Virus record (IMG/VR): IMGVR_UViG_3300032242_000723 | Location: 248,001-312,000 of that record | Direction: 5' to 3' (one strand) | DNA length: 64,000 bases | Shown here: in pieces, positions 5,735 through 62,564 of the stretch | Numbering within the stretch: position 1 is the first letter of the stretch | Layout of the letters: each line of letters starts with the position of its first letter | Position numbers and translations under genes: made by a program | The notes under the pieces: model-generated | The model's input: only the letters and a program-made list of their open reading frames with translations | The model's database searches: none | What the model was told of the DNA's origin: nothing

Positions 5735-8700
5735 ATGCTGAGAGATGTCTTTTATTACGGCGATAAGCCAAATGTACACCCACGAGAACAATACGCAGAA
5801 TCATTTGATGATGCTAGACAGAAGTCTACTACAGAACATTTTTGGATCATTAATGAGTTCTGCGATTATCGTGGATTTGATTGGGACTGGGACTTTGAGT
5901 TCCTTCCTGACGAAGACGTATGGGCAGAACAACATACTAACATATGGCCTAGCCAGCATCAAAAAGATAGTGGCACTTGGCTGTGTTCAAGTGAAGAATA
6001 CGATTTAAACCTATTTATATATCGTAATGATGTTACCCCGATTAAGCGTAAAAATATCAAGACATCTAACTGGGTTGAATTTGACCTAATTGATCAGACG
6101 AAGTTCGACTTCTCATGGCATCCGGACCCAACTGATCCTCCTTATATCTATAAATGGGGCAGCAAGTTTGCTCCGGCACAACTTAAGACATGCTTAGAAT
6201 ATCATGTTGAAGGTGCAACTAGAATAAAGTACATGACTAGTATCGTTGAACTATTACCGGATACAGATCGCTGGATCGAACATCAGGCTATCGACAAAAC
6301 TAAGTTTGATATGTCATGGCGTCCAGACCCAATGGATCCCCCTTTTATCTATATTTGGGGTAATAAGTATATAGAAGGTACATTAAGACCTACACTAGAA
6401 TATCGTGTACCCGATGCAATACATACGAAGTATATGCCTGATTTAATCTCAGTACTCCCTGAATATGATAGATGGGTAGAAGTACAGGCGGTAGATAAGA
6501 GCAAGTTTGACTTTAGTTGGCGACCAGATCCAAGAGAACCGGCATATATCTATACATGGGGTAATAAGTATATTGATGCTGAGTTTATACCTACGCTAGA
6601 ATATCATTGCGAAGGCGCAACAGAACGCAAGTATATGACAAATGATGTTGTTGTACTTCCTCAATATGATAGATGGGTAGAAGTACAGGCGGTAGATAAG
6701 AGCAAGTTTGACTTTAGTTGGCGACCAGATCCAAGAGAACCGGCATATATTTATGTTTGGGGTAATAAGTATATAGAAGGTACATTAATACCTACATTAG
6801 AGTATCATTGTCCCGATGCGACTAAAGTAAAGTATATGACAAACGATGTTGTTGTACTTCCTCAATGGGACAAATGGCAAATTCCTGACAATCTTGACAA
6901 GGCATCATTTGACTTTAGTTGGAGACCTGATCCACGTGAACCTGATTTTATTTACGAGTTTGCAACTCAATGGCAGAAGACAGGTGGACCGCGTTATATT
7001 GTAGAGAACGCAAAACAAAGAAAGTTTATAAATGATATACGAGCTACTATTTTGCCCACACACGCAAATTGGACTATTCCAGACAATATTGACATTAACA
7101 GTTTTGACTTTAGTTGGCATCCTGACGATACCGATCCTGCTTATATCTATGTATTTGGTACTCAATGGGCAACAAGTGGCGGACCAATTTACACTGTTGA
7201 CAATGCTACTAAAACAAAATATGTAGGAGTTCAGGTAGCGTCTGCTGTTGCATCTAAAACTAATTGGAAGTATAATTCAACTGTTGTAGATGAGAGTCAG
7301 TTTGATTTCTCGTGGCATCCAGATCCAAGAGAACCTGCATATATCTATGTATGGGGTAACAAATATGAAGACGGTAAATATAAATCTACAATAGAATATC
7401 ATGCCGAAGGTGCTACTGATGTCAAGTATATGACAAATGATGTCGCTTTGCTTCCTGATTGGGATAGATGGGTATTTCTTAAAGAGGTAGATAAGAACAA
7501 GTTTGACTTTAGTTGGCGACCAGACCCATTAGAACCCGCCTATATCTATACCTGGGGTAACAAGTATGAACCTGCTGAAATATCTCCGACGTTAGAATAT
7601 CATTGTCCTAACGCTACTGATGTAAAGTATATGGGCGATACAGCTCCTGTACTCCCTGAATGGGATAGATGGCAAATTCCTGATAACGTAGATAAATCTA
7701 AGTTCGACTTTACCTGGAGACCGGACCCAAGAGAGCCGCCCTTTATGTATGCGTTTGCTACTGTATGGAATGATAGGGGCGGCCCCATCTATGTTGCACC
7801 TACTTCAACTAAATTCAAATACATTGAAGATGTTAAAGCAGTATTGTTGTCGAGTACTGATAATTGGGAAATTTCTGAAGGAATAAATGTTTCTGACTTT
7901 GACTTCTCGTGGGTTCCGCACCCTCAGGCACCACCTTATATCTATCAGTTTGGTACATTAGGAGATCCTGACGACGGTCCAAGATATGTTTCTCCTGGTA
8001 ATAACGGCGAAATCGTTAAACTTAGAAGAGTAACAAAGAAGTTTGAAAAAGAACAGGTTGTCGCACAGTACTACATCGAAACAACGTTAGCTGATCTAGC
8101 CAGCAAATACCCTAGAAAATTATTTTGGGCTAAACAAAAAAATATTGATTATTCAACGTTCGACTTCACATGGCGACCTACGATTGAACAGGCAGAATAT
8201 GTACATGTATTTGGTTCGTCTGATTCAGATGCCACCCATACATATTTAGTTAACGGTATGCAATGGGCCAAAGGCAATCGTGAATTAAACTGGGTCAAAG
8301 ATGATAAGCTTGATGACAAGACACTGTTCAACATATTCAAGAAGTCTGATATGTTCTATGTTGACAAAGGTAATTTAGAAGCACAAGTAAGATTTGAAAA
8401 GCTTAGACTATTACACCCGCAGATACAAAAGACACGCTATCTAAACTCGTGGGTCGATACTATAAAGCGTTGTAATAATCGTGCAACGAGTGAATTGATA
8501 TGGGTACTCAACTCTGAGCTTGACTATACTGACTTTGACTTTGAATACTATCCTAATCCTTGGCAGATGAAGATGGTACATGTATTTGGTACACAGTGGT
8601 CACATTGGGGAACAACTTTCATGGTTAACAGAGAAACATTTGCCGAAGACACAAAGTATATTAATATCATTGAGCATCTATCTAACATTAACTTTGTAAA

Positions 8701-10069
8701 GAACATCAGAGCTACAGCAACTCAATGTGTATACGATACGATTATTATTGATCACGGTAATAAAGAACTTGATCGAGTCGTAGAACAAGTTACTAGCAAA
8801 ATATCTGGTAAGAACGTAACTGTTGTAAAGTATAACGAAAGTTATTTGCAAACCTTAAAGGATATTGTCGCACGACAGCAAGATAAAAAAGAACATTATC
8901 TGTGGCTATGTAGCAGTGTATGCGACTACTCATCGTTTGATTTCTCATATACTGTTGATCCATTTGCTAGAGATAATCTACATGTATTTGCTAGTGGTAG
9001 TCAGAAGTTTGGTGATACTTTCTTTATTGACGTAAATAAGGCCAAAGAGATTATTGATAAAATGTTGTCGTTAGAATATTATCATAAGGTCAACTATAAT
9101 AATGCACAAAAGGTCACCCGATTACCAGAGCCAATCATTGTTACGAATAATGATACATTAATTGACGCGGCGATGCATATTGAAGGTTTCCCTTATGCAA
9201 CAATCATCACAAGTGATAATAAAGATATCACTGTAATGCCAACAGAGCCTATGAATCTGTGGGCTCCGGAAACTAAGAACATCTTAGTTACATCTACTGG
9301 TGCAACTCGTATTGTTGTGCCTCGTGAAGTCAAAGATCATGTAAGCAAAGAACTATACGACTATCCGTATATTAAGAAAGCATCTAAGCTTGCTATCTCA
9401 TCGCCTATGGACATCGTGTATTTGAGCAACGGTGAGACAGGTGCGGAAGAGAACTGGGAACATCTGCAAAAGATCACAAAGGGATTAAAGAACCGTGTTG
9501 TTCGTGTTGATGGGGTCAATGGTCGTGTTCAAGCATATCATGCAGCATTGGAAGCGAGTGAGACACCTTGGGCATTCACTGTGTTTGCTAAGTTAAAGAT
9601 CAGTCCAAAGTTTGACTTCAACTGGCAACCAGATAGAATGCAAGCTGCAAAGCATTATATCTTCCACGCAAAGAATCCTGTCAACGGCTTGATTTACGGA
9701 CACCAGGCAATGATCGCATACAACAAGCGACTTACATTAGCTAACAAGGGTAACGGACTTGACTTCACTCTAGACGATGAACACGAAGTTGTGCCATTGT
9801 TGTCAGGTATCGCAAACTATAACACAGACGAGTTTTCCACTTGGCGTACATCTTTCCGTGAAGTGTTGAAGTTGAAGGCTGAAGATAGTGACATTGCTCG
9901 TACACGATTAGATGCGTGGCTTAACAAGGCAGAGGGTGACTTTGCTCAATATAGCATCAAGGGTGCGATTGACGCTGATGAATATTATGACGAGGTTGAT
10001 GGTGACTTTGATATGCTGAAGCTTAGTTACGAGTGGTCCTGGCTGAAAGAAAAGTTCGCTAACTCATAA
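5735..10069 (+). CDS. 1444-aa protein with about 15 FDFSW(R/H)PDP repeats and degenerate glycosyltransferase-like domains
   Basis: About 10 tandem ~67-aa units (FDFSWRPDPREPAYIYxWGNKY...PTLEYH..GAT..KYM) plus degenerate copies. C-terminal GT-A-like segment MDIVYLSNGE...VDGVNGRVQAYHAA...FTVFAK. Confidence 0.75.
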   Translation: MLRDVFYYGDKPNVHPREQYAESFDDARQKSTTEHFWIINEFCDYRGFDWDWDFEFLPDEDVWAEQHTNIWPSQHQKDSGTWLCSSEEYDLNLFIYRNDVTPIKRKNIKTSNWVEFDLIDQTKFDFSWHPDPTDPPYIYKWGSKFAPAQLKTCLEYHVEGATRIKYMTSIVELLPDTDRWIEHQAIDKTKFDMSWRPDPMDPPFIYIWGNKYIEGTLRPTLEYRVPDAIHTKYMPDLISVLPEYDRWVEVQAVDKSKFDFSWRPDPREPAYIYTWGNKYIDAEFIPTLEYHCEGATERKYMTNDVVVLPQYDRWVEVQAVDKSKFDFSWRPDPREPAYIYVWGNKYIEGTLIPTLEYHCPDATKVKYMTNDVVVLPQWDKWQIPDNLDKASFDFSWRPDPREPDFIYEFATQWQKTGGPRYIVENAKQRKFINDIRATILPTHANWTIPDNIDINSFDFSWHPDDTDPAYIYVFGTQWATSGGPIYTVDNATKTKYVGVQVASAVASKTNWKYNSTVVDESQFDFSWHPDPREPAYIYVWGNKYEDGKYKSTIEYHAEGATDVKYMTNDVALLPDWDRWVFLKEVDKNKFDFSWRPDPLEPAYIYTWGNKYEPAEISPTLEYHCPNATDVKYMGDTAPVLPEWDRWQIPDNVDKSKFDFTWRPDPREPPFMYAFATVWNDRGGPIYVAPTSTKFKYIEDVKAVLLSSTDNWEISEGINVSDFDFSWVPHPQAPPYIYQFGTLGDPDDGPRYVSPGNNGEIVKLRRVTKKFEKEQVVAQYYIETTLADLASKYPRKLFWAKQKNIDYSTFDFTWRPTIEQAEYVHVFGSSDSDATHTYLVNGMQWAKGNRELNWVKDDKLDDKTLFNIFKKSDMFYVDKGNLEAQVRFEKLRLLHPQIQKTRYLNSWVDTIKRCNNRATSELIWVLNSELDYTDFDFEYYPNPWQMKMVHVFGTQWSHWGTTFMVNRETFAEDTKYINIIEHLSNINFVKNIRATATQCVYDTIIIDHGNKELDRVVEQVTSKISGKNVTVVKYNESYLQTLKDIVARQQDKKEHYLWLCSSVCDYSSFDFSYTVDPFARDNLHVFASGSQKFGDTFFIDVNKAKEIIDKMLSLEYYHKVNYNNAQKVTRLPEPIIVTNNDTLIDAAMHIEGFPYATIITSDNKDITVMPTEPMNLWAPETKNILVTSTGATRIVVPREVKDHVSKELYDYPYIKKASKLAISSPMDIVYLSNGETGAEENWEHLQKITKGLKNRVVRVDGVNGRVQAYHAALEASETPWAFTVFAKLKISPKFDFNWQPDRMQAAKHYIFHAKNPVNGLIYGHQAMIAYNKRLTLANKGNGLDFTLDDEHEVVPLLSGIANYNTDEFSTWRTSFREVLKLKAEDSDIARTRLDAWLNKAEGDFAQYSIKGAIDADEYYDEVDGDFDMLKLSYEWSWLKEKFANS
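6462..6750 (+). repeat. 88-bp identical direct repeat with 201-bp period inside the repeat gene
   Basis: 6462-6549 is identical to 6663-6750. Confidence 0.9.
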
Positions 10070-12198: not shown

Positions 12199-12229
12199 TT
12201 GACATGCACTGACAGACAGTGTATAAATA
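12199..12229 (+). promoter_or_regulatory. Dual promoter of tmRNA (sigma70 plus T4-type late TATAAATA)
   Basis: TTGACA 12199-12204, 17-bp spacer, TATAAATA 12222-12229. Confidence 0.75.
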
Positions 12230-12231
12230 AG

Positions 12232-12596
12232 ATTGAAACTGTTGATACAGGATCAAAGTTGGCGTAGACGCGGGTGCGAATCCCGCCGCCTCCACCATAG
12301 ATACACTAAAGGTGAGAACGGCTACCTCACGCACCAGAAATGGTATAGTAACGATAAAACGTGAAGAGATCCAGGATTGCATCTGGTTAGTGTGTCTATG
12401 ATGGGGGCGACTAGAATCGATACGCAATGGCGACGACGAGTAGGTTTCCGGTAAGTTACGACCGACAATTTGTACAAAAAACGTAAATGCTAACTTTATT
12501 GCTAGCAATGACAACGAGTTTGTAGCTATGGAAATGGCTGCTTAATCTGAGTTATTTGGAGCTTCGGGGATGTGCTCTATAACCTAAACATCCTCA
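12232..12596 (+). ncRNA. ssrA: Circularly permuted (two-piece) tmRNA
   Basis: T-arm GCGGG-UGCGAAU-CCCGC plus CGCCUCC-A-CCA ending at 12297 lies upstream of the 5' end GGGGGCG (12403), giving a 7-bp acceptor stem with G3-U70. Tag ORF 12489-12545 encodes ANFIASNDNEFVAMEMAA* after GUAAAU. The outer ends are approximate. Confidence 0.92.
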
Positions 12597-13367
12597 CTTA
12601 TCTGGGTACACCCAATATTTTGTACCATCTTTCCTAGATATCAGTTTTCTTCCTGTTACTGTTTGAGATTGTTTATCACGCCCTTTTCTGCCGTTAACAG
12701 CAGCGTTAGGGTTAGATAATCCTTTATTCCAGGCCGCTTTCCCTTTTTTAAATCCCGGAACCGCTGTTCCTTTTATCCAGGCAATCTTACCAGAACATAC
12801 CTTTGAACAAGTTTTTTGTTTTTGTGTATAGGTAGTAAAATCTTCGCAACACGCTGGGCATTGTTTAGTATGCAAGAGTTTGATTTTTTTTGTATTTCCT
12901 ACTTTCTTGGTAGTATTGTTTCGTTTCTTTTTTGTCACAGGACAATCAAGTGGAATAAATGACAGTAGCCCACTCTGCCTTAGTTCAACTTCTACTTTAC
13001 TATATCCTTTATTCCAGGCTGGTTTAGTTCTGTTTTTGGTATGTCCCTTACAACTTCCGCCCCTGGATAGTTTCTTTTGATTATAATATCTAACTGTTTT
13101 GTTCTGTATATTAGTGGTCCAATACAGTTCAGTGTCTTTGATCATATTAAGCCAGCGTTGTTCTGCATTACGCAAATCATCTAATTCACCATTAACATAT
13201 TCTAGTACTCTAAACTTAAAGGTATCTGGTCGTTTCTTGTGTGCCCGCAACATCATTGTGTTAGAACAAATATATGCATCTTCTATTAGTCCTTGATGTC
13301 CACCGACATAATAGAACTTTGCTTTGGTATCAAACCAAAGATACACGTAGCCAGTATAAATATTCAT
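12594..13367 (-). mobile_element. Free-standing GIY-YIG (Seg-like) homing endonuclease
   Basis: GYVY-x10-YYVGGH N-terminus, FKFRVLE..E..WL, YYN; repeated AWNKG/AWIKG DNA-binding-module motifs and a CPAC...CSKVC Zn ribbon. Confidence 0.8.
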
Positions 13368-13437
13368 GCTGATAGCTCCTTAATAGCATTAGAGTAGTTG
13401 GAGATTCCCGTCTCGCGAACTATATTAGTATTTATAC
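13368..13437 (-). promoter_or_regulatory. Conserved leader element, copy 1 (late promoter + hairpin + RBS)
   Basis: Minus strand: TATAAATA, TAGTT-CGC-GAGA-6nt-TCTC-C-AACTA, CTCTAATGCT, AAGGAG, CTATCAGC, ATG. 48 of 55 nt identical to 20045-20099. Confidence 0.85.
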
Positions 13438-13460
13438 ATACCTCATTGATAAATACTCGT

Positions 13461-16400
13461 ATGAATCTCAATGAACTCCATTCTTTCAAACTTGCAGATG
13501 CTATCAAGTTTCATACGGAACTTAATCCAAAACTTTGGAAAAATGACCAGTTAGATCCATTAGTTAGAAAGCAGTTATTGATTATTGCTGAGGACTTTGT
13601 TGAGGAGTTAGGAATACCTGATTTGGATATAGTTGATGTAACTATCTCAGGTTCTAACGCCGCATTTACCTGGACTAAACATAGCGATTTAGACCTTCAT
13701 ATCCTCGTAAATATGAGCGAGTTGCACCAAGACGCAATCTACCGCGAACTATTCAGAGCAAAGAAGACATTATATAATAGTAATCACGATATCACGGTGC
13801 ACGGCATCCCAGTTGAACTTTATGTTCAAGATTCAGCCGAACCTGTTGTATCGTTAGGTGAGTACAGTATCCTACATGATAAGTGGATCAAGGTCCCTGT
13901 TCGTAGAGCGGCCAAGTTAGATCAAAATGCTGCCAAAGCAAAGTTTGACCAACTTAAAGATTTGATTAGTGTTGCACTTAAGACTAAGCATAGCAAAAAG
14001 ATCAGTAAAGCCCTAGCATTAATCAAACGTTATCGCCAAGCTGGTCTTGACAAGGGCGGCGAGTTCAGTCCTGAGAACCTTGCCTTTAAGGCTGTTAGAT
14101 CGCAAGGTGCGATTGATGCACTATATGCAATGCGTGATAAGTTACACAGTGCAGAGTTAACGATTGAAGAAGGCTACGCTGGAGCCAAGATGAAGTTCTT
14201 GAAGCCAGGTGAATTGCGTGGATCGTACACGCCTGCTAAACTTACCGCATTAGGATTCAAGAAGTCACAGAACGGCTCATGGTTCATTCTACAATCTAAG
14301 TGGGAAGAGTTGCGTAAGACTGGTCAACTATATGAGACCGATGTTGTTGCAGAAAATCTCAGAAAAGAGTTTGAAGACTTTGATCCTGAAAACTTAGCTG
14401 AAGCACTTGACTCTACACCATATCCTTATGAAGAGATTTCGTCCACTCACCATAACTATATTGCTAGTAGAAGCCAATACATATTCACTACTGAAGATAA
14501 TCTGCCTTATGTAGCTATGATATTCAAATATCCAGGCAATAGAATCCGTATTGAGTTTAAGTCCACAAAGCAAACTCGTGATTTTCTTGGGTTCGAGGTG
14601 ACAGGTACAGGTGATGCCCGTAAGGTATTCGCTACTGTGATTGACATTGTGAAGAAGTATGTAGATAAGCATCATCCTGTTGAAATATCATTCTCAGCCA
14701 AAGAACCAAGCAGAGTCCGTTTATACGATGCGTTCTTGAAAAGACTGGATAGAGAGTTACCTGATTATGAAGGCAAATCGGGTCCAGGATACGAACCAGA
14801 TAATACATATTACCATCTCACTTTAAAAAATCAAAAGATAGACGAATCACTTGACTCACAACCATATCCTTATATTTCAACTATCGGCACAACAGGTGCA
14901 CATGAATATGCGTTCACTACGGATGACGATAACGAATATGAAGCCATAATCATTAATCAAAAATTTGGGATCCATGTATCTTTTTTTCTAAAACAAAAAC
15001 AACATAAAAATGGCCTAATCATAACCCGCACAGGTATAACGGGTACCGGCGATGCTCGTAGAGTGTTCGCTACTGTTATTGATATCGTGAAGAAATTCGC
15101 AGCAGCAGAGAAGCCTGAAGCCATAGTGTTTACTGCAAGTGAACCTAGCAGGATCCGTTTGTATGACGCATTCGTTAAAAGATTAGACAGAGAATTACCT
15201 GAGTATGCTGAGACTCGTAAAGAAAAAGGCATGGCAGAATGGTTCGTACTTCTACGCAAAACTAAGAAGATAGACGAAGCAACCGACCGTGACAGTGCGA
15301 TTAAGCAGATATTGAAGTTACAGAACACACAAGGTCGTTCACCAAGTGAGATAGAGGCATCAAAAGCTATCATCGCTAAAATGATGAAACGCTATAACAT
15401 TCATTCAAAAGAGTTGCTACCAGTTGAACGTAATCCATACCAAGATCGTATCAAACAAGCACGAGCCGAGCGTGATGTAGCAGGCGATATGCTAAAGGCA
15501 GAGTGGGATAGATTCAAAGGTGGGATCAAGGATAAGGTGTCTACTATCTTTAAAGAAGACTTAGACGAAGCACTTGATTCCCAACCATATCCATACGAGA
15601 TTGAAGAAGATAGCATAGCCTGGCAGATCAGCACCTTCACGACAAGTGACCGAAACCGTTATAAGGTTTGGGTAGTGAAATACAGTAATAAAGAAGTTTC
15701 GGTTGAATTCTCCTATCAAGGTAACGATGACATTGACACGAACTCAATGGAAATTGAAAACATAGGTGATGCCCGTAAGGTATTCGCTACTGTGATTGAG
15801 ATTGTAAAGAACTACGCTAAGAAGTATAAACCTAATAAGATTTCTTTTGACGCTGATCCAACTGAACCAAGCAGGATTCGTTTTTATAGTGCTCTTGTCA
15901 AGAGAGCAGACCGAATGTTGCCGGACTACGAAGATCAATCAATTGACTTCCTAGGTGACTTCAACCTTGTTAGAAAAGGTTATCAGTTTAACGAATCAAT
16001 AGTCTATCATGTGACCCCTACTAAAAATGTAAAGTCTATTATGCGTGACGGATTACGACCTCAAGTCGGCAACCGTTCGAGTAAGATTACAGGTGAAGAT
16101 AATGGTATCTTTGTCTTCAATAGCAAAAACGATGCAGAAGATGCTATAATGAACTGGCTCGGTGATGAGTTCGGTGAAGATGCTGAGTTAACCTTATTAG
16201 CAATCGATGCTGAAGGATTAGAACAGCATATGTCTACGGGTGCAGGATACGAAACAATCATGGATGTAGGGATCGAGCCTAGTCGTATTCGAGTAACTCA
16301 GGATATTCTTGAAGCATCTGGTTACATTCCAAGCAAGAAGGAAGCGAACGATCCTCGCTTCTCAACTGCGTTAACGGTAGATGTGAAACCTGATTCAATA

Positions 16401-16481
16401 CAAAAGAACGCTAAGGCATTTGGTTCAAAAACTTCACGAGCAGGTATTCCACCTCAAGCACGGACTGACGGCAAGATTTAA
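13461..16481 (+). CDS. 1006-aa polyvalent polyprotein: nucleotidyltransferase + 3 copies of an unknown domain + DUF2786-like + ADP-ribosyltransferase-like
   Basis: Start ATG 13461, 5 nt after TAAATA. SGSNA..SDLDLH Pol-beta NTase motif; three E(A/S)LDSxPYPY...GDARKVFATVI...EPSRIRLY units; KQILKLQ..SPSEIEASKAIIAKMMKRYNI; YHVT..NVKSIMRDGL.P. Confidence 0.8.
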   Translation: MNLNELHSFKLADAIKFHTELNPKLWKNDQLDPLVRKQLLIIAEDFVEELGIPDLDIVDVTISGSNAAFTWTKHSDLDLHILVNMSELHQDAIYRELFRAKKTLYNSNHDITVHGIPVELYVQDSAEPVVSLGEYSILHDKWIKVPVRRAAKLDQNAAKAKFDQLKDLISVALKTKHSKKISKALALIKRYRQAGLDKGGEFSPENLAFKAVRSQGAIDALYAMRDKLHSAELTIEEGYAGAKMKFLKPGELRGSYTPAKLTALGFKKSQNGSWFILQSKWEELRKTGQLYETDVVAENLRKEFEDFDPENLAEALDSTPYPYEEISSTHHNYIASRSQYIFTTEDNLPYVAMIFKYPGNRIRIEFKSTKQTRDFLGFEVTGTGDARKVFATVIDIVKKYVDKHHPVEISFSAKEPSRVRLYDAFLKRLDRELPDYEGKSGPGYEPDNTYYHLTLKNQKIDESLDSQPYPYISTIGTTGAHEYAFTTDDDNEYEAIIINQKFGIHVSFFLKQKQHKNGLIITRTGITGTGDARRVFATVIDIVKKFAAAEKPEAIVFTASEPSRIRLYDAFVKRLDRELPEYAETRKEKGMAEWFVLLRKTKKIDEATDRDSAIKQILKLQNTQGRSPSEIEASKAIIAKMMKRYNIHSKELLPVERNPYQDRIKQARAERDVAGDMLKAEWDRFKGGIKDKVSTIFKEDLDEALDSQPYPYEIEEDSIAWQISTFTTSDRNRYKVWVVKYSNKEVSVEFSYQGNDDIDTNSMEIENIGDARKVFATVIEIVKNYAKKYKPNKISFDADPTEPSRIRFYSALVKRADRMLPDYEDQSIDFLGDFNLVRKGYQFNESIVYHVTPTKNVKSIMRDGLRPQVGNRSSKITGEDNGIFVFNSKNDAEDAIMNWLGDEFGEDAELTLLAIDAEGLEQHMSTGAGYETIMDVGIEPSRIRVTQDILEASGYIPSKKEANDPRFSTALTVDVKPDSIQKNAKAFGSKTSRAGIPPQARTDGKI

Positions 16482-16875: not shown

Positions 16876-18015
16876 ATGTCTCAAGTATCTACCGATCTAA
16901 CGGTTAACTCCGTACAGGCTCGCAAGGCCATTCTACAAGCATTCAAGGTCAAGCGACCCGTGTTTCTCTGGGGTCCCCCAGGTATCGGTAAATCGGAAGT
17001 TGTTTCCGATATCACTGATGAACTCGGCGGCTATATGGTCGATCTGCGTATGGCGCAGATGGAACCTACTGATATTCGCGGTATTCCTTACTTCAATAAG
17101 GAAAACGGCAAGATGGACTGGGCTGAGCCTGTCGATCTTCCAAGTGCTGAACTCGCTGCACAATATCCAATCGTCGTTCTCTTCCTCGATGAAATGAACT
17201 CGGCACCCCCTGCTGTTCAGGCAGCTGGTTATCAGTTGATCCTCAATCGTCGTGTTGGTAAGTACAAGCTTCCTGATAACGTGGTTATTGTCGCTGCTGG
17301 TAACCGCGATAGCGATAAGGGCGTTACATATCGTATGCCGATGCCGCTCGCAAATCGTTTCGTTCACATTGAAATGCGTCCTGACTTCGCATCTTGGCAA
17401 GCATGGGCTGTCAACAAGGGCATTCACCGTGACGTTGTTGGTTATCTCTCGTTCGCTAAGCAAGACTTGTATGACTTCAACGCTAAGTCGTCTTCTCGTG
17501 CATTTGCTACCCCGCGTTCGTGGTCCTTCGTTAGCGACATGATCGCCAATGAAAATGTCCCTTCGACTAGCGAAGATACGCTTGACAAGTTGGCAGGCGC
17601 ACTTGATCAAGATACTCTCTTGCATCTTGTCTCGGGTTCTGTTGGTGAAGGCCTTGCTACGAAGTTCATGGCACACCGCAAGTATGCAAGTCGTATGCCT
17701 AATCCTGCTGACATTCTGTCGGGTAAGGTCAAGGATCTTGACGTGAAGGAAATCTCTGCGATGTATTCGTTGACGATTTCTATGTGTTACGAGTTGCGTG
17801 ATGCAGTCACTAACAAGGTCGATCATAAGCAGTTTCATATCATGATTGATAACTTCCTCGAATATATGATGAAGAACTTTGAGACTGAGTTGGTTATCAT
17901 GGGTGCAAAGGTCGCTCTCAAGACCTACAAGCTTCCTATTAAGCATGAGGATTTGAAGACGTTTGATGCGTTCCACAAGCAGTTCGGTCGGCATATTGTG
18001 GAAGCAGGTAGCTAA
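16876..18015 (+). CDS. MoxR/CbbQ-like AAA+ ATPase
   Basis: Walker A GPPGIGKS, Walker B LFLDEMN, AAGN, PLANRF, TPRSW. Confidence 0.9.
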   Translation: MSQVSTDLTVNSVQARKAILQAFKVKRPVFLWGPPGIGKSEVVSDITDELGGYMVDLRMAQMEPTDIRGIPYFNKENGKMDWAEPVDLPSAELAAQYPIVVLFLDEMNSAPPAVQAAGYQLILNRRVGKYKLPDNVVIVAAGNRDSDKGVTYRMPMPLANRFVHIEMRPDFASWQAWAVNKGIHRDVVGYLSFAKQDLYDFNAKSSSRAFATPRSWSFVSDMIANENVPSTSEDTLDKLAGALDQDTLLHLVSGSVGEGLATKFMAHRKYASRMPNPADILSGKVKDLDVKEISAMYSLTISMCYELRDAVTNKVDHKQFHIMIDNFLEYMMKNFETELVIMGAKVALKTYKLPIKHEDLKTFDAFHKQFGRHIVEAGS

Positions 18016-18024
18016 GCTACCCGC

Positions 18025-18063
18025 TACAGGGGGAGGTTAGAGACGTCCTCCCCCTGTATTTTT
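18025..18063 (+). terminator. Rho-independent terminator
   Basis: 12-bp stem TACAGGGGGAGG/CCTCCCCCTGTA followed by T5. Confidence 0.85.
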
Positions 18064-18075
18064 GTATAAAATATC

Positions 18076-18104
18076 TTGACAAATTGTCTCATATGTATTA
18101 TATA
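18076..18104 (+). promoter_or_regulatory. Sigma70-type promoter
   Basis: TTGACA-17 bp-TATATA. Confidence 0.7.
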
Positions 18105-18133
18105 TTAAGACTTAATCAAGCAAAGGATATCTC

Positions 18134-19432
18134 ATGACCACACTCACTACGGCTAGTAAGCAAAGTAAGAAAAAGAAGTCTAGCGGCGAAAAATATGAAA
18201 ATCTCGTAGGACCAACTGATCCTAAAGTAGACTTTGCTGCACGAGATCGTTTGGTCTCTGCCCGTGTCGGGCTTTTGCTAAATCATTCTTTCTTCGGCAA
18301 CCTTGCAACTCGCATGAAGTTGATCAACGCTGATGAATGGTGCGGTACTGCTGCAACCGACGGACTAAACTTCTATTACAACTCACGCTTTATTATGATG
18401 CTCAGGACTAAGGAAGTTGAATTCCTAGTCGGTCACGAAGTCCTTCACATTGTTTATGATCATTTGGGTCGTCGCGGTAGCCGTGATCCTCAAATCTTTA
18501 ACATCGCAAACGACTATGCAGTCAACGCAGACTTGAAGAAGCACAAGGTCGGTGAGTTCATTACGACGGTACCTTGCTTGTATGATGCTAAGTATCTTGA
18601 CTGGGCTTCGGAAGTAATCTATGACGATTTGATGAAGAATGTTCAATACATCAACGTCCAGTCTTTGCTTGATCAAATGATTGACGATCACTTAGATGGT
18701 GAAGGCGATAGTGACGAAGACGGCGAGGGCGAAGGCAACGGTAACGGCAAGGGTCGTCCAAAGATGACCGAAGCCGAACGCGAGGCTATGCGTCAAGAAA
18801 TGAAGCAGGCTATCATCAGTGCTGCACAGTCTTCGGATGCAGGTTCTGTCCCGCTTGGTGTTCAACGTATGATCAAGGATCTCACTGATCCTGTTATGCC
18901 CTGGCGCGAATTGATCCAAACAAACTTGACTTCGGCTATCAAGAATGATTATAGCTGGATGCGTCCTTCGCGTCGTAGCTGGCATATGGATGCAGTGATG
19001 CCTGGTATGACTCCCGGTGAAGAGATTGACGTGACTGTCATGGTTGATATGTCAGGTTCTATCTCTAACAAGCAGGGGATGCAGTTCCTAAGTGAAGTTG
19101 CAGGTATGATGGACTCGTTTGATGGCTATCGTATTCGCATTGCTTGCTTTGATACTCAAGTGTATAACATGCAGGAGTTTACTTCTGAGAACATGGAAAA
19201 GATCGAGGAATATCAACTAGCAGGCGGCGGGGGAACCGATTTCGATTGCTTCTTCAACTATCTTAAGGAAAATGCTATCGAGCCTAATCGGTTGATCGTA
19301 TTCACAGATGGGTATCCGGCCGGAAGTTGGGGCGATCCAGAATACTGCGATACAACTTGGATCATTCATGGTGATCCCAATCCAAATCCCCCATTCGGAA
19401 CTTTTGCGATTTATGATGATCACATGAATTAA
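18134..19432 (+). CDS. Metallopeptidase-like (HExxH) + vWA domain protein (DUF2201-like)
   Basis: TAATDG, HEVLH, NIANDYAVN, MIDAS VDMSGS, GGGGTDF, VFTDG. Confidence 0.88.
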   Translation: MTTLTTASKQSKKKKSSGEKYENLVGPTDPKVDFAARDRLVSARVGLLLNHSFFGNLATRMKLINADEWCGTAATDGLNFYYNSRFIMMLRTKEVEFLVGHEVLHIVYDHLGRRGSRDPQIFNIANDYAVNADLKKHKVGEFITTVPCLYDAKYLDWASEVIYDDLMKNVQYINVQSLLDQMIDDHLDGEGDSDEDGEGEGNGNGKGRPKMTEAEREAMRQEMKQAIISAAQSSDAGSVPLGVQRMIKDLTDPVMPWRELIQTNLTSAIKNDYSWMRPSRRSWHMDAVMPGMTPGEEIDVTVMVDMSGSISNKQGMQFLSEVAGMMDSFDGYRIRIACFDTQVYNMQEFTSENMEKIEEYQLAGGGGTDFDCFFNYLKENAIEPNRLIVFTDGYPAGSWGDPEYCDTTWIIHGDPNPNPPFGTFAIYDDHMN

Positions 19433-20042
19433 TAATGCTTGTACTGGAGAAATCCTCGTATAACTGTACGAGGGTTTTTTCTGACTTTTTGTGTTTCTTA
19501 TAGTTTTCTTTATCGGTTATTAACCTAAGATTGGATATATCCGAGACTACGTTGATAGGTACATCATTTAAAAATCCATCAGTGACACTAAAAATATGAT
19601 CCACATGCCAATCTCTACTTCTTTTTCGTTCCGGATCAATATCATCTATATGTCTTGAATACTGAGTTTCTGCGTATTGATGGCATCGTCTTCCGTAGGT
19701 AGCACGATCCATACCATCAATAGTAAAATCTTTGTTTTCATAAATCTTGTTCCAATAGTCTGATCGTTTTTCGGAAAGGTCTTTCTTGATACAGGGTGCT
19801 TTAGAAACATTATCTACCCCATATTTCTCTATTGATTTTTCTTTGCGGACATCCTTCACGTAATCACATGAACTCGCATTAGGGAAACCATATCGTTCTA
19901 CGCATGTTTCCTGCATCCTCTTTAGGACCGCAGGACATCCTGCCGGTTTATGCGAACATACTGCTTTTCCTTTTTTGGTAAATCTTATTGCTTGGTCACC
20001 ACAACCATTTTCACATAGCGGTAAAGATTGATCTAAATACAT
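19362..20042 (-). mobile_element. HNH-type (putative homing) endonuclease with N-terminal CENGCG Zn motif and CxxRYG repeats
   Basis: Start corrected to ATG 20042 after AAGGAG. WHVDHIFSV..GF...ISDISNLRLI...N.KK is an HNH-like C-terminus; TCVERYG and SIEKYGVDN repeats. Confidence 0.7.
19450..19480 (+). terminator. Terminator after the vWA gene (lies inside the antisense HNH ORF)
   Basis: AAATCCTCGTA/TACGAGGGTTT stem followed by a T-run. Confidence 0.65.
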
Positions 20043-20044
20043 TT

Positions 20045-20113
20045 GCTGATAGCTCCTTGTAAGCATTAGAGTAGTTGGAGACGCCAATCTCGCGAACTAC
20101 ATCTTTATTTATC
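20045..20113 (-). promoter_or_regulatory. Conserved leader element, copy 2
   Basis: Minus strand: GATAAATA, same hairpin stems and AAGGAG as 13368-13437; only the loops differ. Confidence 0.85.
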
Positions 20114-20157: not shown

Positions 20158-20403
20158 ATGACACACACTATTGCCGATCTAAATCTAAATCATTGGTATA
20201 TTGACCGAGAGTTAGCATATTGTCCTGATCACTTTGTGGCTTCTAGGGTAGATTTAACTCCTGAAAGATATCTTTGGATTCAAGAAAAACTAGTTGGAAG
20301 ATTTGTGCGTGTTGCATCTCGGAATTCAGATAGATCCTTTGAAATGGTTCCTGCTTTTGAGGATCCGTCCGAGATGCTCTTCTACGAACTAGTCTGGGGC
20401 TAA
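20158..20403 (+). CDS. Small protein of a dispersed W..E(N/K)...FxLxW family
   Basis: RYLWIQEKL ... MLFYELVWG. Confidence 0.6.
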   Translation: MTHTIADLNLNHWYIDRELAYCPDHFVASRVDLTPERYLWIQEKLVGRFVRVASRNSDRSFEMVPAFEDPSEMLFYELVWG

Positions 20404-27932: not shown

Positions 27933-27962
27933 TCACAAGCCTGTTGCTATATAAATATTATC

Positions 27963-28658
27963 ATGAGCAACATTGACATCAACCAAACACTAGACCTAAT
28001 CAAACTCAAGTTCTACAACGAATATCTGTACACCGCCCACCTGTACGATGAAGGCGACAGTCCATTTCATAAAGAACTAACAGCACAAGTCGTAAAGACT
28101 TATGTAGACCCACTCAATCTTCCAAAAGATGCACATATTCTTGATCTTGGATGCGGCCCTGGCTACTTCTTAGACGAGATGAAGGAACGCGAGTACACTA
28201 ACACTGTTGGTGTCACACTCAGTCCAGGTGATATCAAGATTTGTGAAGACAAGGGACATGTGATCAAGAAGTATGATCTATCATTTCTTCCACAGAAGGA
28301 TGGCTACTACGATGAGTCAGTAGACTTTATCTTCTTGCGTCATGCACTTGAGCATAGTCCGTATCCTATCTTCTCATTGATGGAATATAATCGTATCCTC
28401 AAGCAGGGATCAAAGATTTACATTGAAGTTCCAGCCCCAGACTGTGAACGACAACATGAATCTAACCTGAATCACTATTCTATCTTAGGTTCTAATCAGT
28501 TGGGAGCACTATTACAACGCTGTGGATTCAACATTGATGCGTTTAACAACTTAGAGTTTGATCTTCATATTCCAACCGAAGATGGTGAAACTAAGAAGGT
28601 TACTGAAAAGTATTATTGCATAGTTGCCACGAAGGCTAAACCACTAGATGTAAAGTAA
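27963..28658 (+). CDS. Class I SAM-dependent methyltransferase
   Basis: ILDLGCGPG, VDFIFLRHALEH, RILKQG. Confidence 0.9.
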   Translation: MSNIDINQTLDLIKLKFYNEYLYTAHLYDEGDSPFHKELTAQVVKTYVDPLNLPKDAHILDLGCGPGYFLDEMKEREYTNTVGVTLSPGDIKICEDKGHVIKKYDLSFLPQKDGYYDESVDFIFLRHALEHSPYPIFSLMEYNRILKQGSKIYIEVPAPDCERQHESNLNHYSILGSNQLGALLQRCGFNIDAFNNLEFDLHIPTEDGETKKVTEKYYCIVATKAKPLDVK

Positions 28659-31665: not shown

Positions 31666-31935
31666 ATGACAGACAATGCTGGTATCAATCTTGTTGTAAA
31701 GGGAAGTTGTAATCCCTTCGGTGGTTGCGGCGGCGGATGTTGCAAAGTTAGAGTGTACGAACCTGGAAATGTAAACTATCATTTAGAATGGTGCGAGTAT
31801 TTTGATGAACCTACTCGTAAATGTAAAATATACGAAACTAGACCCGAGGGGTGCAGAACATACCCAACTGTAAGGCACATCCAACACGATATATGGTTAA
31901 TACCAGGTTGTGGATATTACCTTGAAGAAGAATAA
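31666..31935 (+). CDS. YkgJ-like Cys-cluster (Zn/Fe-S chelating) protein
   Basis: C-x5-C-x3-CC ... C..F......C.IY..RP..CR.YP; ATG at 31666. Confidence 0.75.
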   Translation: MTDNAGINLVVKGSCNPFGGCGGGCCKVRVYEPGNVNYHLEWCEYFDEPTRKCKIYETRPEGCRTYPTVRHIQHDIWLIPGCGYYLEEE

Positions 31936-31943
31936 ATACTATC

Positions 31944-33491
31944 ATGAGTAACGCACCTTCACTAATCAAAGACCCATATAAGAAAACAGTATTTAAAAAT
32001 CAACAAGAACTAGACGATTTCGTTAAATGTTGTGACCCGGCAACAGGTTATCTATATTTCATGGATAACTTCTTTATGATTCAACACCCTACTCGTGGCA
32101 GTATGAACTATCACCCCTGGGCATTCCAAGAACGATTGATTGAAACATATCACAAATATCGTTTTTCTATCTCACTGATGCCAAGACAGTCTGGTAAATC
32201 AACAAGTGCAGCCGGATACTTGCTTTGGTATGCAATGTTCAATCCGGACTCAACGATATTAATCGCAGCACACAAATATACAGGTGCTCAGGAAATCATG
32301 CAGCGTATTCGTTATGCGTATGAAAACTGCCCAGATCATATCAAGGCTGGTGTCACAACCTATAACAAGGGTTCTATTGACTTTGAAAACGGTTCGCGTA
32401 TCGTATCTGCTACAACGACTGAGAACACTGGTCGTGGTATGTCAATCACCTTATTATATCTTGACGAGTTCGCATTCGTTAGACCTTCAATCGCTAAAGA
32501 GTTCTGGACAGCAATCACTCCTACTCTGTCAACAGGAGGTAAAGCCATTATCACATCAACACCAAACTCAGATGAAGATCAGTTCGCACTCATATGGAAA
32601 GGTGCTAACAAGACAGAAGACGAGTTCGGCAATACTACTGATATAGGCGTAAACGGATTTAGAGCATATAGAGCATACTGGAGAGAACAGCCGGGCCGCG
32701 ACGACAAATGGGCTGCTGAACTCCGTGCTCAACTCGGGGATGATCGCTTTCGCAGAGAGATGGATTGCGATTTTATCATCGCAGACGAGACGCTTATCAA
32801 TCCAAACACGTTACTACTGTTAGACGGCATCGAACCTGTTTCTCGTATGGGACAAATACGCTGGTACCAACAACCTGTCAAGGGAAATATATACGCAGTT
32901 GGTCTTGATCCTTCATTAGGTACAGGTGGCGATCCATCTGCGATACAGATATATGAAGCAAATACAACCACACAGATTGGTGAATGGAAGCATAATAAGA
33001 CTGACATTCCTAGCCAGATCAAGTTGATTGCTGAAGTTTGTAGGCACATAGAATCCATCACGAAAGAACCAAACAACATCTATTACTCTATTGAGAGCAA
33101 TGGTATCGGTGAAGCGGCTATCATATCATTAAACGAGTTCGGTGAATCAAACATCCCAGGAACCTTCTTGAGTGAGAGCGGCAAAAAGCGTAAGGGCTTT
33201 AACACAACAAACAAGGTCAAGATCGCCGCGTGTGCTAAGTTCAAAACATTGCTAGAATCAAAGAAAATGACAGTCAATAGCCGTCCATTGATCAGCGAAC
33301 TTAAAGCATTTGTCGCATCTGGTGGCAGTTATGCAGCCAAAATCGGTGACACGGATGATTTGGTAATGGCCTCACTATTAGCGGTTAGAATGATGACTCA
33401 ACTCGCAGAGTATCATGGTGACTTAGAATCTCAAATCAGAGATCATAGTGAGTTCATTGAGCCATTACCCTTCTTTGCGGTACTCGGATAA
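31944..33491 (+). CDS. terL: Terminase large subunit (T4 gp17-like)
   Basis: PRQSGKST Walker A, LLYLDEFAFV Walker B, ITSTPN, GLDPSLGTGGD and DDLVMA nuclease motifs. Confidence 0.95.
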   Translation: MSNAPSLIKDPYKKTVFKNQQELDDFVKCCDPATGYLYFMDNFFMIQHPTRGSMNYHPWAFQERLIETYHKYRFSISLMPRQSGKSTSAAGYLLWYAMFNPDSTILIAAHKYTGAQEIMQRIRYAYENCPDHIKAGVTTYNKGSIDFENGSRIVSATTTENTGRGMSITLLYLDEFAFVRPSIAKEFWTAITPTLSTGGKAIITSTPNSDEDQFALIWKGANKTEDEFGNTTDIGVNGFRAYRAYWREQPGRDDKWAAELRAQLGDDRFRREMDCDFIIADETLINPNTLLLLDGIEPVSRMGQIRWYQQPVKGNIYAVGLDPSLGTGGDPSAIQIYEANTTTQIGEWKHNKTDIPSQIKLIAEVCRHIESITKEPNNIYYSIESNGIGEAAIISLNEFGESNIPGTFLSESGKKRKGFNTTNKVKIAACAKFKTLLESKKMTVNSRPLISELKAFVASGGSYAAKIGDTDDLVMASLLAVRMMTQLAEYHGDLESQIRDHSEFIEPLPFFAVLG

Positions 33492-33530
33492 GATTGCACA
33501 GACTATTTCACATTTAGTATAAATAGTATC

Positions 33531-35522
33531 ATGGCACTAGAAAACAAATCATTCAATGTAAAACTTTATAAACTTTTGAAATCTAAAGGTTATGAACCAG
33601 TTCCTTTGGACTCAAAGAACAAAAGAGTTCAAGCATCACAAGAAGCTGATGTTATTGAGTTCACTTTCAAAAAAGAAGGTGAAGATTATGGCAAAGCTTG
33701 GGTAAGTATCGACGATGCTCAACGGGTCATAGTATATTACGACGATGAGCAAGAAAACAGTCCAAGCGAAGTAACTCCAGGTGTTGATTACGATGATACT
33801 TGGACAGGTTTCTTGACCCACTTAAAGAACTGGTCAATGCGTAAGCAACTTGATTTTGAATTAGCCAACAAAGACCGCTTAGGCGATGACATGAGACAAC
33901 GGGATTATCATAAGATGAAAGAAAAAGTATCAGAAGGCTATCACGCTATGGGCAGAGCAAAAAGTTATAATGACAATGTACCAGATGTAAAGATCGTCCT
34001 TCAACATAGCCGTAATATCGAAGAAGGTGAACAACGCTATCGTAACGTAGCGAAAATCTATCTTGAAAACTCAGACGGCGAGCGTATCCTTGCACCTACT
34101 AACAAGCCAGGCGTAGCACAGATTTATGCACGTCACTTAGCAGAAGGTGGACAACCTCATGATGAACGTTGGAATCACTTGAAGGGTCTTTGCGAAGAAT
34201 ATAACAAGATGGCTGGATTTGTCCGTGCTACCCGCAATGGTGAGTTCACTGAGTCCGCACAAAAACTCGTACAAGAAGGTATCAATCACTATAATAAGTT
34301 ACGTGAATCACTTAGCAAGATGCGTGGTTCGCGTGGCTACAACGCATACTTTGAATCATGGTCACCTCCTCTCATGGAAGATGAGAGTGATGACACGATC
34401 AATGAACTATTCGTCCAGGAAACAATGGATCCTCGTATCGAGTCGGTTATGCCAATCCTCTCACGCCTTCGCAAGAATGTAGTAGAGATGAATGAAGTTG
34501 GTATGCTTGAAAGCTGGGCTGACAATGTTATCAATGAGAAGCTGGAACTTGGCGAATATAACGATCATGAAATGGCTGACACAAAAACTGACATGAGAAA
34601 AACAGGTGATGAAGTCACATCAGAGCATGACGAAGCCTATGCAAAGTTAAAGAGAATGGCACCCGAACTCTATAACTTCATTCGTAACGAAGCTCCGATG
34701 CCGATTGATCCGATCCAAACATTACAATATCTTCGCCAATCAGGTGGAAATGCAGGACAACTATTACGTATGCTTAAGGATCACATCAAGCAAGATACCG
34801 AAAAGCAATACGACAAAAAGCATCCATCCTTAGCAGAAAGCATGAAGCGTTTCTTAGAGACACTCGTGAATGAAGGACTCAAAGATACAGGTTGGATGGA
34901 CAAGGACGAAGCCGAGGACGGCACGGTTCCTGCATTCATGCGTAAGAAGCAATATGACGACAAGATGAAGGACGCTACGGGCGGCCCTGCAGTTCGTACT
35001 GCAAAGAACAAGCCTGAAGACGAAATTGACGAAAACTTCATCAGCATGGACGCACAAGCCGTAGCAGAAGAAGATGATGCAGGTCAACTCAAAGGTGGCC
35101 CAATCGAAGCCTATGGTGTACATGGCGTGAAGTCTAAGCAATGGCGCAAGACATTTAAAAGTCAAGCTGCGTTTGAAAAATGGTTAGACAAAAATGAAGG
35201 CAACGTTGAAGTTTATGGCACTCGTGACCTAGATGAAAGCCTAGACGAATCTAGTTATCCTTGGTTAGATCATAATGATCGTCCTGCAAACAAAAGAGAC
35301 AAATCGCGTGATTCAGAAGAAGCATTGCGTAAAGAAGTCTCGCGTAAACAGGAAAAGAAGGTTGAAGAAGATTTAGATGCTAACCAAAAGCGTGTAGGTC
35401 AACTTGGTCCTACAGAAAAGGTCAAGAACAATAACATCGGTAAACTAGTAGGTGCCAACGAAAGCACTGAGTATGATGAAGAATTGGCAAGAATAATGGA
35501 TATTGCCCGTTTTAAAAGATAA
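33531..35522 (+). CDS. 663-aa modular head-associated protein
   Basis: Late, leaderless start. Acidic C-terminal half is broken by VNEG, IDEN, LDES-LDES, VEED and ANES sites. Confidence 0.55.
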   Translation: MALENKSFNVKLYKLLKSKGYEPVPLDSKNKRVQASQEADVIEFTFKKEGEDYGKAWVSIDDAQRVIVYYDDEQENSPSEVTPGVDYDDTWTGFLTHLKNWSMRKQLDFELANKDRLGDDMRQRDYHKMKEKVSEGYHAMGRAKSYNDNVPDVKIVLQHSRNIEEGEQRYRNVAKIYLENSDGERILAPTNKPGVAQIYARHLAEGGQPHDERWNHLKGLCEEYNKMAGFVRATRNGEFTESAQKLVQEGINHYNKLRESLSKMRGSRGYNAYFESWSPPLMEDESDDTINELFVQETMDPRIESVMPILSRLRKNVVEMNEVGMLESWADNVINEKLELGEYNDHEMADTKTDMRKTGDEVTSEHDEAYAKLKRMAPELYNFIRNEAPMPIDPIQTLQYLRQSGGNAGQLLRMLKDHIKQDTEKQYDKKHPSLAESMKRFLETLVNEGLKDTGWMDKDEAEDGTVPAFMRKKQYDDKMKDATGGPAVRTAKNKPEDEIDENFISMDAQAVAEEDDAGQLKGGPIEAYGVHGVKSKQWRKTFKSQAAFEKWLDKNEGNVEVYGTRDLDESLDESSYPWLDHNDRPANKRDKSRDSEEALRKEVSRKQEKKVEEDLDANQKRVGQLGPTEKVKNNNIGKLVGANESTEYDEELARIMDIARFKR

Positions 35523-62463: not shown

Positions 62464-62557
62464 CTCCTGTTTGATAAATAGATTCATACGCTCTCGCTCG
62501 GAGAGTTTATGCAGTTTAACCCACTGCGTAGCAAGTAGACCTTGCACCAAACAGGAG
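62464..62557 (+). promoter_or_regulatory. Structured multi-hairpin 5' leader with RBS-sequestering stem
   Basis: CTCCTGTTTG/CAAACAGGAG 10-bp stem encloses GATAAATA and three hairpins. Confidence 0.7.
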
Positions 62558-62564
62558 AAAACAA

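Follow-up and report, generated by a model that had tools for sequence, protein, structure and literature searches.

A conserved structured leader module preceding homing endonuclease genes of uncultured phages, and its possible role in sense/antisense RNA control

A repeated stretch of 55 nucleotides, which precedes two unrelated genes in a phage contig, was found to belong to a large and apparently undescribed family of structured modules, which are located in front of homing endonuclease-like genes in uncultured, mostly freshwater, phages of the T4-terminase type. At least 140 distinct copies were detected in viral contigs of IMG/VR, both stems of the first hairpin covaried when stem positions were left free in the scans, and nearly all of the 119 complete downstream ORFs resembled homing endonucleases from several unrelated families. 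The module may perhaps work as a pair of sense and antisense RNAs which limits production of the nuclease, although this reading is tentative, since it is inferred from sequence alone.

The two copies and their genes

The window, i.e., the whole stretch of 64,000 nucleotides which was analysed, is part of the 333-kb contig IMGVR_UViG_3300032242_000723; the loci L004, L010 and L241 (loci recovered in the searches are given here with L numbers) are identical to it. The terminase large subunit is 48% identical to those of the jumbo phages PA5oct and Phosso, and is more distantly related to those of T4-like phages. On the minus strand, positions 13368–13422 (copy A) and 20045–20099 (copy B) are 48/55 identical, with four of the seven differences in a 6-nt segment and three in a 3-nt segment. 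A 38-nt pattern spanning the block matched only these two places with up to 3 mismatches, against 0 in 100 shuffles, and a repeat search listed them as one two-copy family. A covariance model, run with filters off, detected only these two in the window, with 88 and 85 bits, the next hit being at 12.8 bits. Thus, the observation of the earlier note, a shared leader in front of two unrelated ORFs, was confirmed.

Each copy lies between an ATAAATA on the minus strand (13429–13435 and 20106–20112, respectively) and the ATG (13365–13367 and 20040–20042) of an ORF, namely ORF A (12594–13367, 257 aa) and ORF B (19362–20042, 226 aa). These are the only ORFs of 150 aa or more on the minus strand of the window, and the only nuclease-like ORFs which were detected there by tblastn with 119 relatives. 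The ORFs are unrelated (BLASTP E value 0.37), and neither gave a significant match with Pfam; searches with PHROGs and of PDB sequences did not classify them either.

ORF A was identified by a search for homologues, an AF2 model and Foldseek. It has 1,556 relatives in the representative library, and in an alignment of 60 of these the residues Y9, G22, R46, E69 and N96 are invariant or nearly so. Some homologues matched Pfam GIY-YIG, SegE_GIY-YIG, NUMOD3 and the I-TevI DNA-binding domain. The AF2 model has a mean pLDDT of 84 (about 97 over residues 1–100, the N-terminal domain), and its best PDB match is the catalytic domain of I-TevI (1mk0, probability 1.00, TM 0.58 on the target). ORF A is therefore a GIY-YIG homing endonuclease, with NUMOD3-like repeats in the C-terminal part, and the label in the earlier note was confirmed. 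The label "HNH-type" for ORF B was not confirmed, since it rests on a motif seen by eye (H-x-D-H...N...N) and on weak matches to DUF7487, phrog_3339 ("homing endonuclease") and phrog_5104. No Pfam HNH hit was obtained at E values up to 10, a profile search of the PDB gave nothing, and the AF2 model, built from an alignment of three sequences, was too poor to be searched (pLDDT 47). The last ~23 aa of ORF B are antisense to the 3' end of the neighbouring gene and are absent from homologues; the ORF is nuclease-like.

In copy A, hairpin 1 (13395–13423) consists of an outer stem of 6 bp, a CGC/C internal loop, an inner stem of 4 bp and a 6-nt loop, CGGGAA; it is followed (13368–13394) by a CUCUA linker, a weak hairpin 2, which carries the Shine-Dalgarno sequence AAGGAG (13376–13381), and a conserved CAGC (13368–13371). 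In copy B, hairpin 1 (20072–20100) has the loop TTGGCG, followed (20045–20071) by the CUCUA linker, hairpin 2 with AAGGAG (20053–20058) and CAGC (20045–20048). The hairpins drawn in the earlier note are those predicted by ViennaRNA, but the folds are no more stable than those of shuffled sequences (z +0.2 and +0.4); thus, the evidence for structure is comparative and not thermodynamic.

A family of modules preceding nuclease genes

Scans of IMG/VR with exact patterns returned more than 200 loci, whereas an exact scan of 185,579 bacterial and archaeal genomes returned none. After removal of duplicates at least 140 distinct copies remained, and more divergent ones were added by the covariance model. 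The 333-kb contig alone contains at least 8 copies (L004, two in L009, L010, L011, two in L015, and L103). No match was found by megablast of both loci and blastn of the module against 50,697 phage records, and a literature search for the motif strings returned only chance hits in lists of aptamers. A scan of positions 13300–13500 against Rfam 15 at E values up to 10 gave only snoRNA noise, and the whole window at the gathering score gave only tmRNA_permuted, skipping-rope and freshwater-2, all of them elsewhere.

The common plan, from 5' to 3' on the nuclease strand, is NTAAATA, 3–5 nt, G, an outer stem arm of 5 nt, C(G/A)C, an inner stem of 4 bp with a 6- or 7-nt loop, one C (rarely U), the other outer stem arm, C, UCUA, a weak hairpin with the Shine-Dalgarno sequence in its loop and 3' arm, CAGC, 0–3 nt, ATG, 0–2 nt and TATTTAN.

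Of the 140 distinct copies, 119 have a complete downstream ORF (median 211 aa). PHROGs assigned 63 of these to phrog_314 and 39 to phrog_655 (both "homing endonuclease") and many others to HNH families; Pfam detected NUMOD3 in 39, HNH_3 in 9, HNH in 7, DUF7487 in 4, and GIY-YIG or SegE in 6. Clustering of the N-terminal 95 residues yielded two GIY-YIG-like groups (47 and 28 members), one HNH group (30 members) and several small groups, and the module occurs before GIY-YIG (two subfamilies), HNH_3, HNH, DUF7487/TnsA-like and NUMOD3-only ORFs. No clear non-nuclease gene was found. A less biased sample was obtained with 80 loci (668 kb), which were retrieved through the unrelated neighbouring VWA/metallopeptidase protein. 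Here the model had hits at 13 places, 6 of them distinct, all on the strand opposite to that gene and all preceding nuclease-like ORFs; 13 of the 17 nuclease-like regions in these loci carried the module. An equal occurrence before non-mobile genes, which had been named beforehand as a refuting condition, was therefore not observed.

Near-identical leaders precede unrelated ORFs; for example, copy A and the copy at position 6038 of L003 differ only in the loop. The intergenic site between the VWA gene and an 81-aa gene is empty in L224 (stop and start 1 nt apart) and L270 (37 nt apart), contains an ORF-B-type nuclease in the window and in L295, and contains a GIY-YIG nuclease with the same module in L228–230. 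The empty-site relatives are only about 75% identical in protein, and the insertion boundaries were therefore not resolved to the nucleotide. Of 97 nucleases with two scorable neighbours, 62 are inverted relative to both. No conserved element follows the ORFs (no enriched 8-mer in 118 ORF tails); only the 5' module is shared.

The interpretation of the earlier note was partly supported. A portable nucleic acid module, which accompanies interchangeable and unrelated nuclease ORFs and is essentially restricted to such genes, is in agreement with the data, and "expression cassette" is right in outline, since a promoter-like element, a leader and a Shine-Dalgarno sequence are all present. The suggestion of a guide scaffold or the cis end of a mobile-element family was not supported. 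Apart from the general picture of a structured RNA next to nuclease ORFs, nothing speaks for a guide or scaffold RNA of the HEARO or omega-RNA kind, or for a transposon end, and this appears very unlikely: no Rfam family matched, HEARO included, the nucleases are GIY-YIG or HNH homing types with NUMOD3 DNA-binding modules, the structured part comprises about 57 nt with a loop of 4–7 nt as the only variable segment, no element ends were found, and no recombinase or RuvC-type nuclease is involved.

The portability could also suggest a module at the DNA level, i.e., a recombination handle for swapping of nuclease ORFs, comparable to PeSL cassettes (PMC2839356, PMC4122927) or to structured single-strand sites such as attC, where the hairpin would form in DNA. 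The near-identical leaders and the alternative occupants of one intergenic site are consistent with this. However, no recombinase accompanies the module, no matching element is present at the 3' side, homing requires no cis site, and shuffling driven by homology would preserve sequence rather than produce compensatory changes in stems; in addition, the Shine-Dalgarno sequence and the promoter geometry point to expression. This explanation is considered unlikely, although shuffling through the module as an evolutionary process is compatible with any of the functions discussed here.

Structure, strand preference and promoter-like elements

Since the stem sequences were fixed in the first three scans, the invariance found there is uninformative. 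In two further scans one stem was left as N, and the free stem was complementary far above chance. For the inner stem, where the scan covered the larger subfamily with 7-nt loops and not that with 6-nt loops, 43 of 48 distinct cores had 4 of 4 pairs, in 10 different sequence combinations; for the outer stem, 16 of 21 distinct arm combinations had 5 of 5 pairs, where about 0.7% would be expected by chance. In a MAFFT alignment of 134 sequences, 11 of 14 pairs showed double changes, and the covariation score was 0.41, compared to 0.13 in shuffles (0 of 500 reached it) and 0.07 or less in slid controls. This set had been filtered for pairing, and thus the percentage paired is by construction, but not the diversity of pair types. 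Hairpin 2 is weak (-1 to -5 kcal/mol), but also exchanges GC, AU and UA pairs.

Three features had not been recognized in the earlier note: the conserved module extends beyond the ATG, the non-Watson-Crick pattern favours the strand opposite to the nuclease gene, and the loop differences are bracketed by a covarying C..A/U..G pair. With respect to the first, TATTTAN follows the start codon in about 82% of copies and occurs in all three reading frames (22, 14 and 66 copies). Within one protein family (65–66% identity), ORF B of the window, L295 and L158 begin with MYLDQS, MTIYNQ and MIFI, which are the three frames over the same TATTTA. The distance to CAGC is 5±1 nt in 103 of 110 copies, wherever the ATG lies in between. 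Read on the other strand this is NTAAATA-N5-G, the geometry of the sense element (TAAATA-N5-G in 80 of 130 copies). A conserved antisense mini-ORF (MLIAP) was ruled out, because the frame is not kept in other copies.

A T4-type late promoter is a TATAAATA-like element about 6 nt upstream of the start site, which is found before late (virion, packaging) genes. In the window, ATAAATA is present 5 nt before the ATG of the terminase large subunit gene (31944), of a virion protein gene (33531), of the 1006-aa gene next to copy A (13461) and of others, i.e., in the position of a T4-type late promoter with the A of the ATG as start site, and the same element and spacing occur on both sides of the module. 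The predicted start sites of the nuclease mRNAs are 13423 for copy A and 20100 (G) for copy B. The predicted antisense promoters on the plus strand are ATAAATA at 13356–13362 (TATTTAT in codons 2–4 of the nuclease gene), with the start at 13368, and CTAAATA at 20033–20039 (TATTTAG after the ATG), with the start at 20045. In both copies the conserved block is exactly the stretch between the two predicted start sites, 13368 to 13423 and 20045 to 20100. About 9 copies have TACTTAT, which would spoil the antisense element.

The element inside the ORF could perhaps serve as an outward-facing promoter, which re-starts late transcription of a neighbouring phage gene after the inverted insertion cut it off from its operon; the structured RNA would then merely be the new 5' leader of that gene. 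Most insertions are inverted, the flanking genes of empty sites are 1–37 nt apart and probably co-transcribed, and the 81-aa gene at 20158 has no ATAAATA of its own. This explanation is rather improbable, since TATTTA is kept equally often when the upstream neighbour is co-oriented (27 of 31) as when it is opposite (61 of 76), the gene next to copy A has its own ATAAATA at 13449, and the covarying hairpins are not explained.

In 87 distinct model-aligned copies, the non-Watson-Crick cells in the 13 modelled pairs were A.C in 23 and G.U in 2 cases on the nuclease strand. The middle base of the C(G/A)C bulge and the lone C form a pair, with GC 71, AC 13, AU 3 and GU 0. The loop-closing positions were C..A in 61, U..G in 13 and Watson-Crick in only 3 copies; in the set of 140 copies the corresponding numbers were 96, 28 and 5. 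Since A.C on one strand is G.U on the other, the better-formed structure would by the usual criterion be on the strand opposite to the nuclease gene, i.e., the plus strand of the window, which also folded more stably in 127 of 134 copies (mean -15.8 against -11.9 kcal/mol). However, the copies are phylogenetically related and the counts are not independent, and strands rich in G and U fold better for compositional reasons alone. The 28 copies with U.G on the nuclease strand have C.A on the other, so that neither strand is clean; the near-total avoidance of Watson-Crick pairs at this position suggests that a wobble geometry, or an open loop, is itself wanted. A G.T versus A.C asymmetry would also arise in a single-stranded DNA hairpin.

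A sense-only 5' leader, which is less favoured but not excluded, would also be conceivable, if A+.C pairs are tolerated: the late mRNA would begin with a hairpin that protects it, or that binds a conserved phage or host protein at the CGC/C internal loop and the CUCUA tail, hairpin 2 would tune access to the Shine-Dalgarno sequence, and TATTTAT would be an A/U-rich translation enhancer or pair with AUAAAUA in read-through transcripts, as in T4 gene e and I-TevI (PMC3014915). The location between promoter and ATG, the Shine-Dalgarno sequence in hairpin 2 and the invariance of the internal-loop nucleotides and CUCUA are consistent with this, and a long-range AUAAAUA:UAUUUAU helix is predicted in longer transcripts. 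On the other hand, mismatches are almost all A.C on this strand, and there is no covariation between the first base of the promoter element and the last base of TATTTAN; the base before TAAATA is A in most copies on both strands, with C or G as minority forms. In addition, read-through transcripts should be rare with 62 of 97 nucleases opposite to both neighbours, TATTTA is anchored to CAGC and not to the ATG, and in 30 of 130 copies the promoter spacing would start the mRNA inside the outer stem. Two other readings were ruled out: a CsrA-type site (GGA in two loops), because loop 1 often lacks GGA, and a pseudoknot between loop 1 (CUGG) and (U/C)CAG before the ATG, because CAGC is invariant while the loop varies.

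A possible antisense control and comparison with known systems

The 55-nt repeat would thus be the core of a portable control module of roughly 90 bp at the 5' end of free-standing homing endonuclease genes, with two late-promoter-like NTAAATA elements facing each other. In this view, transcription towards the nuclease gene would give an mRNA which starts at the foot of hairpin 1 and carries the Shine-Dalgarno sequence in the weak second hairpin, and transcription from the opposite element would give an RNA of 70–85 nt, complementary to the whole 5' leader, Shine-Dalgarno sequence included (predicted at 13368–13440 and 20045–20113, plus strand). This RNA would fold into the mirror hairpins and end in the U-rich complement of the sense promoter (for copy B, CAUCUUUAUUUAU); however, the U-rich tail is dictated by the sense promoter, and a simple terminator scan did not call it. 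The antisense RNA is proposed to pair with the leader, starting at the variable loops, and so to limit translation or stability of the nuclease mRNA in proportion to genome copy number. Pairing at the loops would explain why the differences between the two copies in the window are confined to the loops of the two hairpins.

The analysis demonstrated the family, its covariation, its restriction to nuclease genes, the frame-independent TATTTAN, the geometry of the promoter-like elements and the strand asymmetry; that both elements fire, that the antisense RNA exists, that it covers the ribosome-binding site in the cell and that it represses are inferences, as both promoters and both start sites are predicted, without transcript data, from a heptamer and its spacing. 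This explanation is preferred, but it is regarded as somewhat less likely than not. A more far-reaching version, which appears doubtful, would be a dedicated and horizontally shuffled "governor" cassette, adopted by at least four unrelated nuclease families across many phages, whose variable loops, bracketed by an obligatory wobble (U.G/C.A) pair, act as kissing-loop specificity determinants, so that the many copies in one genome are regulated separately, in parallel to plasmid incompatibility groups.

Free-standing homing endonucleases are the commonest selfish genes of large phages, and what keeps them from harming their carrier has been worked out in only a few T4 cases, each with its own gene-specific hairpin. 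A single conserved module, supported by covariation and shared by unrelated nuclease families in well over a hundred distinct loci, implies a common and transferable solution to this problem, and provides a sequence signature for finding such genes in metagenomes, including very divergent ones which are missed by Pfam; the family is also a ready candidate for Rfam. Leader or antisense control of an enzyme of a selfish element is known as such; this family, its restriction to homing endonucleases of several classes and its symmetric design with two promoter-like elements appear to be undescribed. Should the antisense reading be right, it would be a phage counterpart of the IS10 paradigm, and a compact natural bidirectional late-promoter and RNA-control part.

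In IS10/Tn10, RNA-OUT limits the transposase by pairing with RNA-IN; hok/sok and CopA-type systems are related examples of antisense control. On the antisense reading, the module would share with IS10 convergent promoter-like elements, which fit in sequence and spacing and whose predicted transcripts would overlap at their 5' ends, a short predicted antisense RNA, dominated by an imperfect stem-loop and complementary to the ribosome-binding region of the mRNA of a selfish-element enzyme, and the logic of self-restraint dependent on copy number. It differs in that the promoter-like elements are T4-late-type heptamers and not sigma-70, that the genes are homing endonucleases of several families, and that the predicted overlap is the whole 56-nt leader and stops just short of the AUG. 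T4-type phages restrict expression of homing endonucleases by late promoters and RNA structure (PMC3014915), and the proposed control fits their known need to keep these enzymes late and low. In T4 the homing endonuclease genes of I-TevI, mobE and segB and the lysozyme gene e are controlled by a late promoter plus a hairpin that sequesters the ribosome-binding site; the module resembles this in the late-promoter-like element immediately upstream, in the predicted RNA structure around the translation start, and in the restriction of a nuclease to late and low expression which would result. In T4, however, the hairpins are gene-specific and act on read-through early transcripts, whereas here one conserved module serves many unrelated nucleases, most of which are inverted relative to their neighbours, and the pairing that would sequester the start shows no covariation. 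PeSL cassettes of T4-like phages (PMC2839356, PMC4122927) are also short conserved modules of promoter and stem-loop, associated with variable, shuffled ORFs and probably a point of genetic exchange; they combine an early promoter with a terminator stem-loop and flank ORFanage genes of any kind, while the present module had no sigma-70-like site beyond chance, carries late-type elements, lies only at the 5' side and is specific to nucleases. Finally, an antisense RNA overlapping a homing endonuclease gene is reported in the T4-like cyanophage S-PM2 (CfrI, as summarised in PMC2984593); CfrI comprises about 225 nt, links the endonuclease gene to psbA, has no resemblance to the module in sequence or structure, and is not a portable family.

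Insertion sites and arrays of nuclease cassettes

On the plus strand of the window, positions 16876-19432 hold a gene for a MoxR-like AAA ATPase, followed by a gene for a DUF2201 metallopeptidase/VWA protein; this pair is conserved at 70-78% identity in at least 237 IMG/VR loci. The intergenic site between the VWA gene and the 81-aa gene occurs in three states in related phages: it is empty in loci L224 (3117-3136) and L270 (3948-3985), occupied by an ORF-B-type nuclease in locus L295 (5221-5927), or occupied by a GIY-YIG nuclease in locus L228 (5254-6024). Both occupied states are inverted and carry the module, whereas other relatives hold 200-1200 nt of unrelated small ORFs at this site. A 12-kb contig (L185, 5700-11051, minus strand) carries five tandem nuclease cassettes, each with its own copy of the module; these copies have different inner stems (GAGA, GAAG, GATG) and loops.

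The 3' end of nuclease B and other reading frames

Nuclease B has a C-terminal extension of about 23 aa (window 19362-19432), which is absent from its homologues in L295 and in a further locus, L158. The extension is encoded antisense to the conserved 3' end of the neighboring gene; thus, the stop codon seems to have been lost or displaced. Just after the stop of the VWA/metallopeptidase gene, at 19446-19481 on the plus strand, lies a strong terminator-like hairpin (16 pairs followed by a T run), which falls inside the conserved C-terminal coding region of nuclease B on the other strand (EKTLxQLYEDF).

Repeats were found in two large plus-strand ORFs. A 1444-aa ORF (5735-10069) contains about ten tandem repeats of 201 nt (67 aa) with a conserved FDFSWxPDP...YIY..WG motif. 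The 1006-aa ORF next to copy A (13461-16481) has three internal repeats (DUF6934, phrog_16075/6387) and an N-terminal phrog_36119 domain.

Late-type elements and structured RNAs

Several late-type genes on the plus strand have ATAAATA exactly 5 nt before the ATG, namely (with the stretch from ATAAATA through the ATG in brackets) the 1006-aa ORF (13449-13463), a 231-aa ORF (27951-27965), the gene for the terminase large subunit (31932-31946) and that for a virion protein (33519-33533). As far as can be inferred from sequence alone, this implies leaderless late mRNAs, in contrast to the predicted 56-nt leader of the nuclease genes, which bears a Shine-Dalgarno sequence.

Comparison with Rfam families showed a permuted (two-piece) tmRNA at 12235-12545 on the plus strand, with a score of 100 bits, and nested within it a match to skipping-rope RNA at 12302-12394, although ARAGORN reported no tmRNA or tRNA anywhere in the window. 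An ATAAATA lies at 12223, and nuclease gene A is inserted between this RNA gene and the 1006-aa late gene. A further match, to the freshwater-2 RNA motif (56.7 bits), was obtained at 62490-62567 on the plus strand, directly downstream of an ATAAATA at 62474 and upstream of a 455-aa ORF for which there was no PHROG match.
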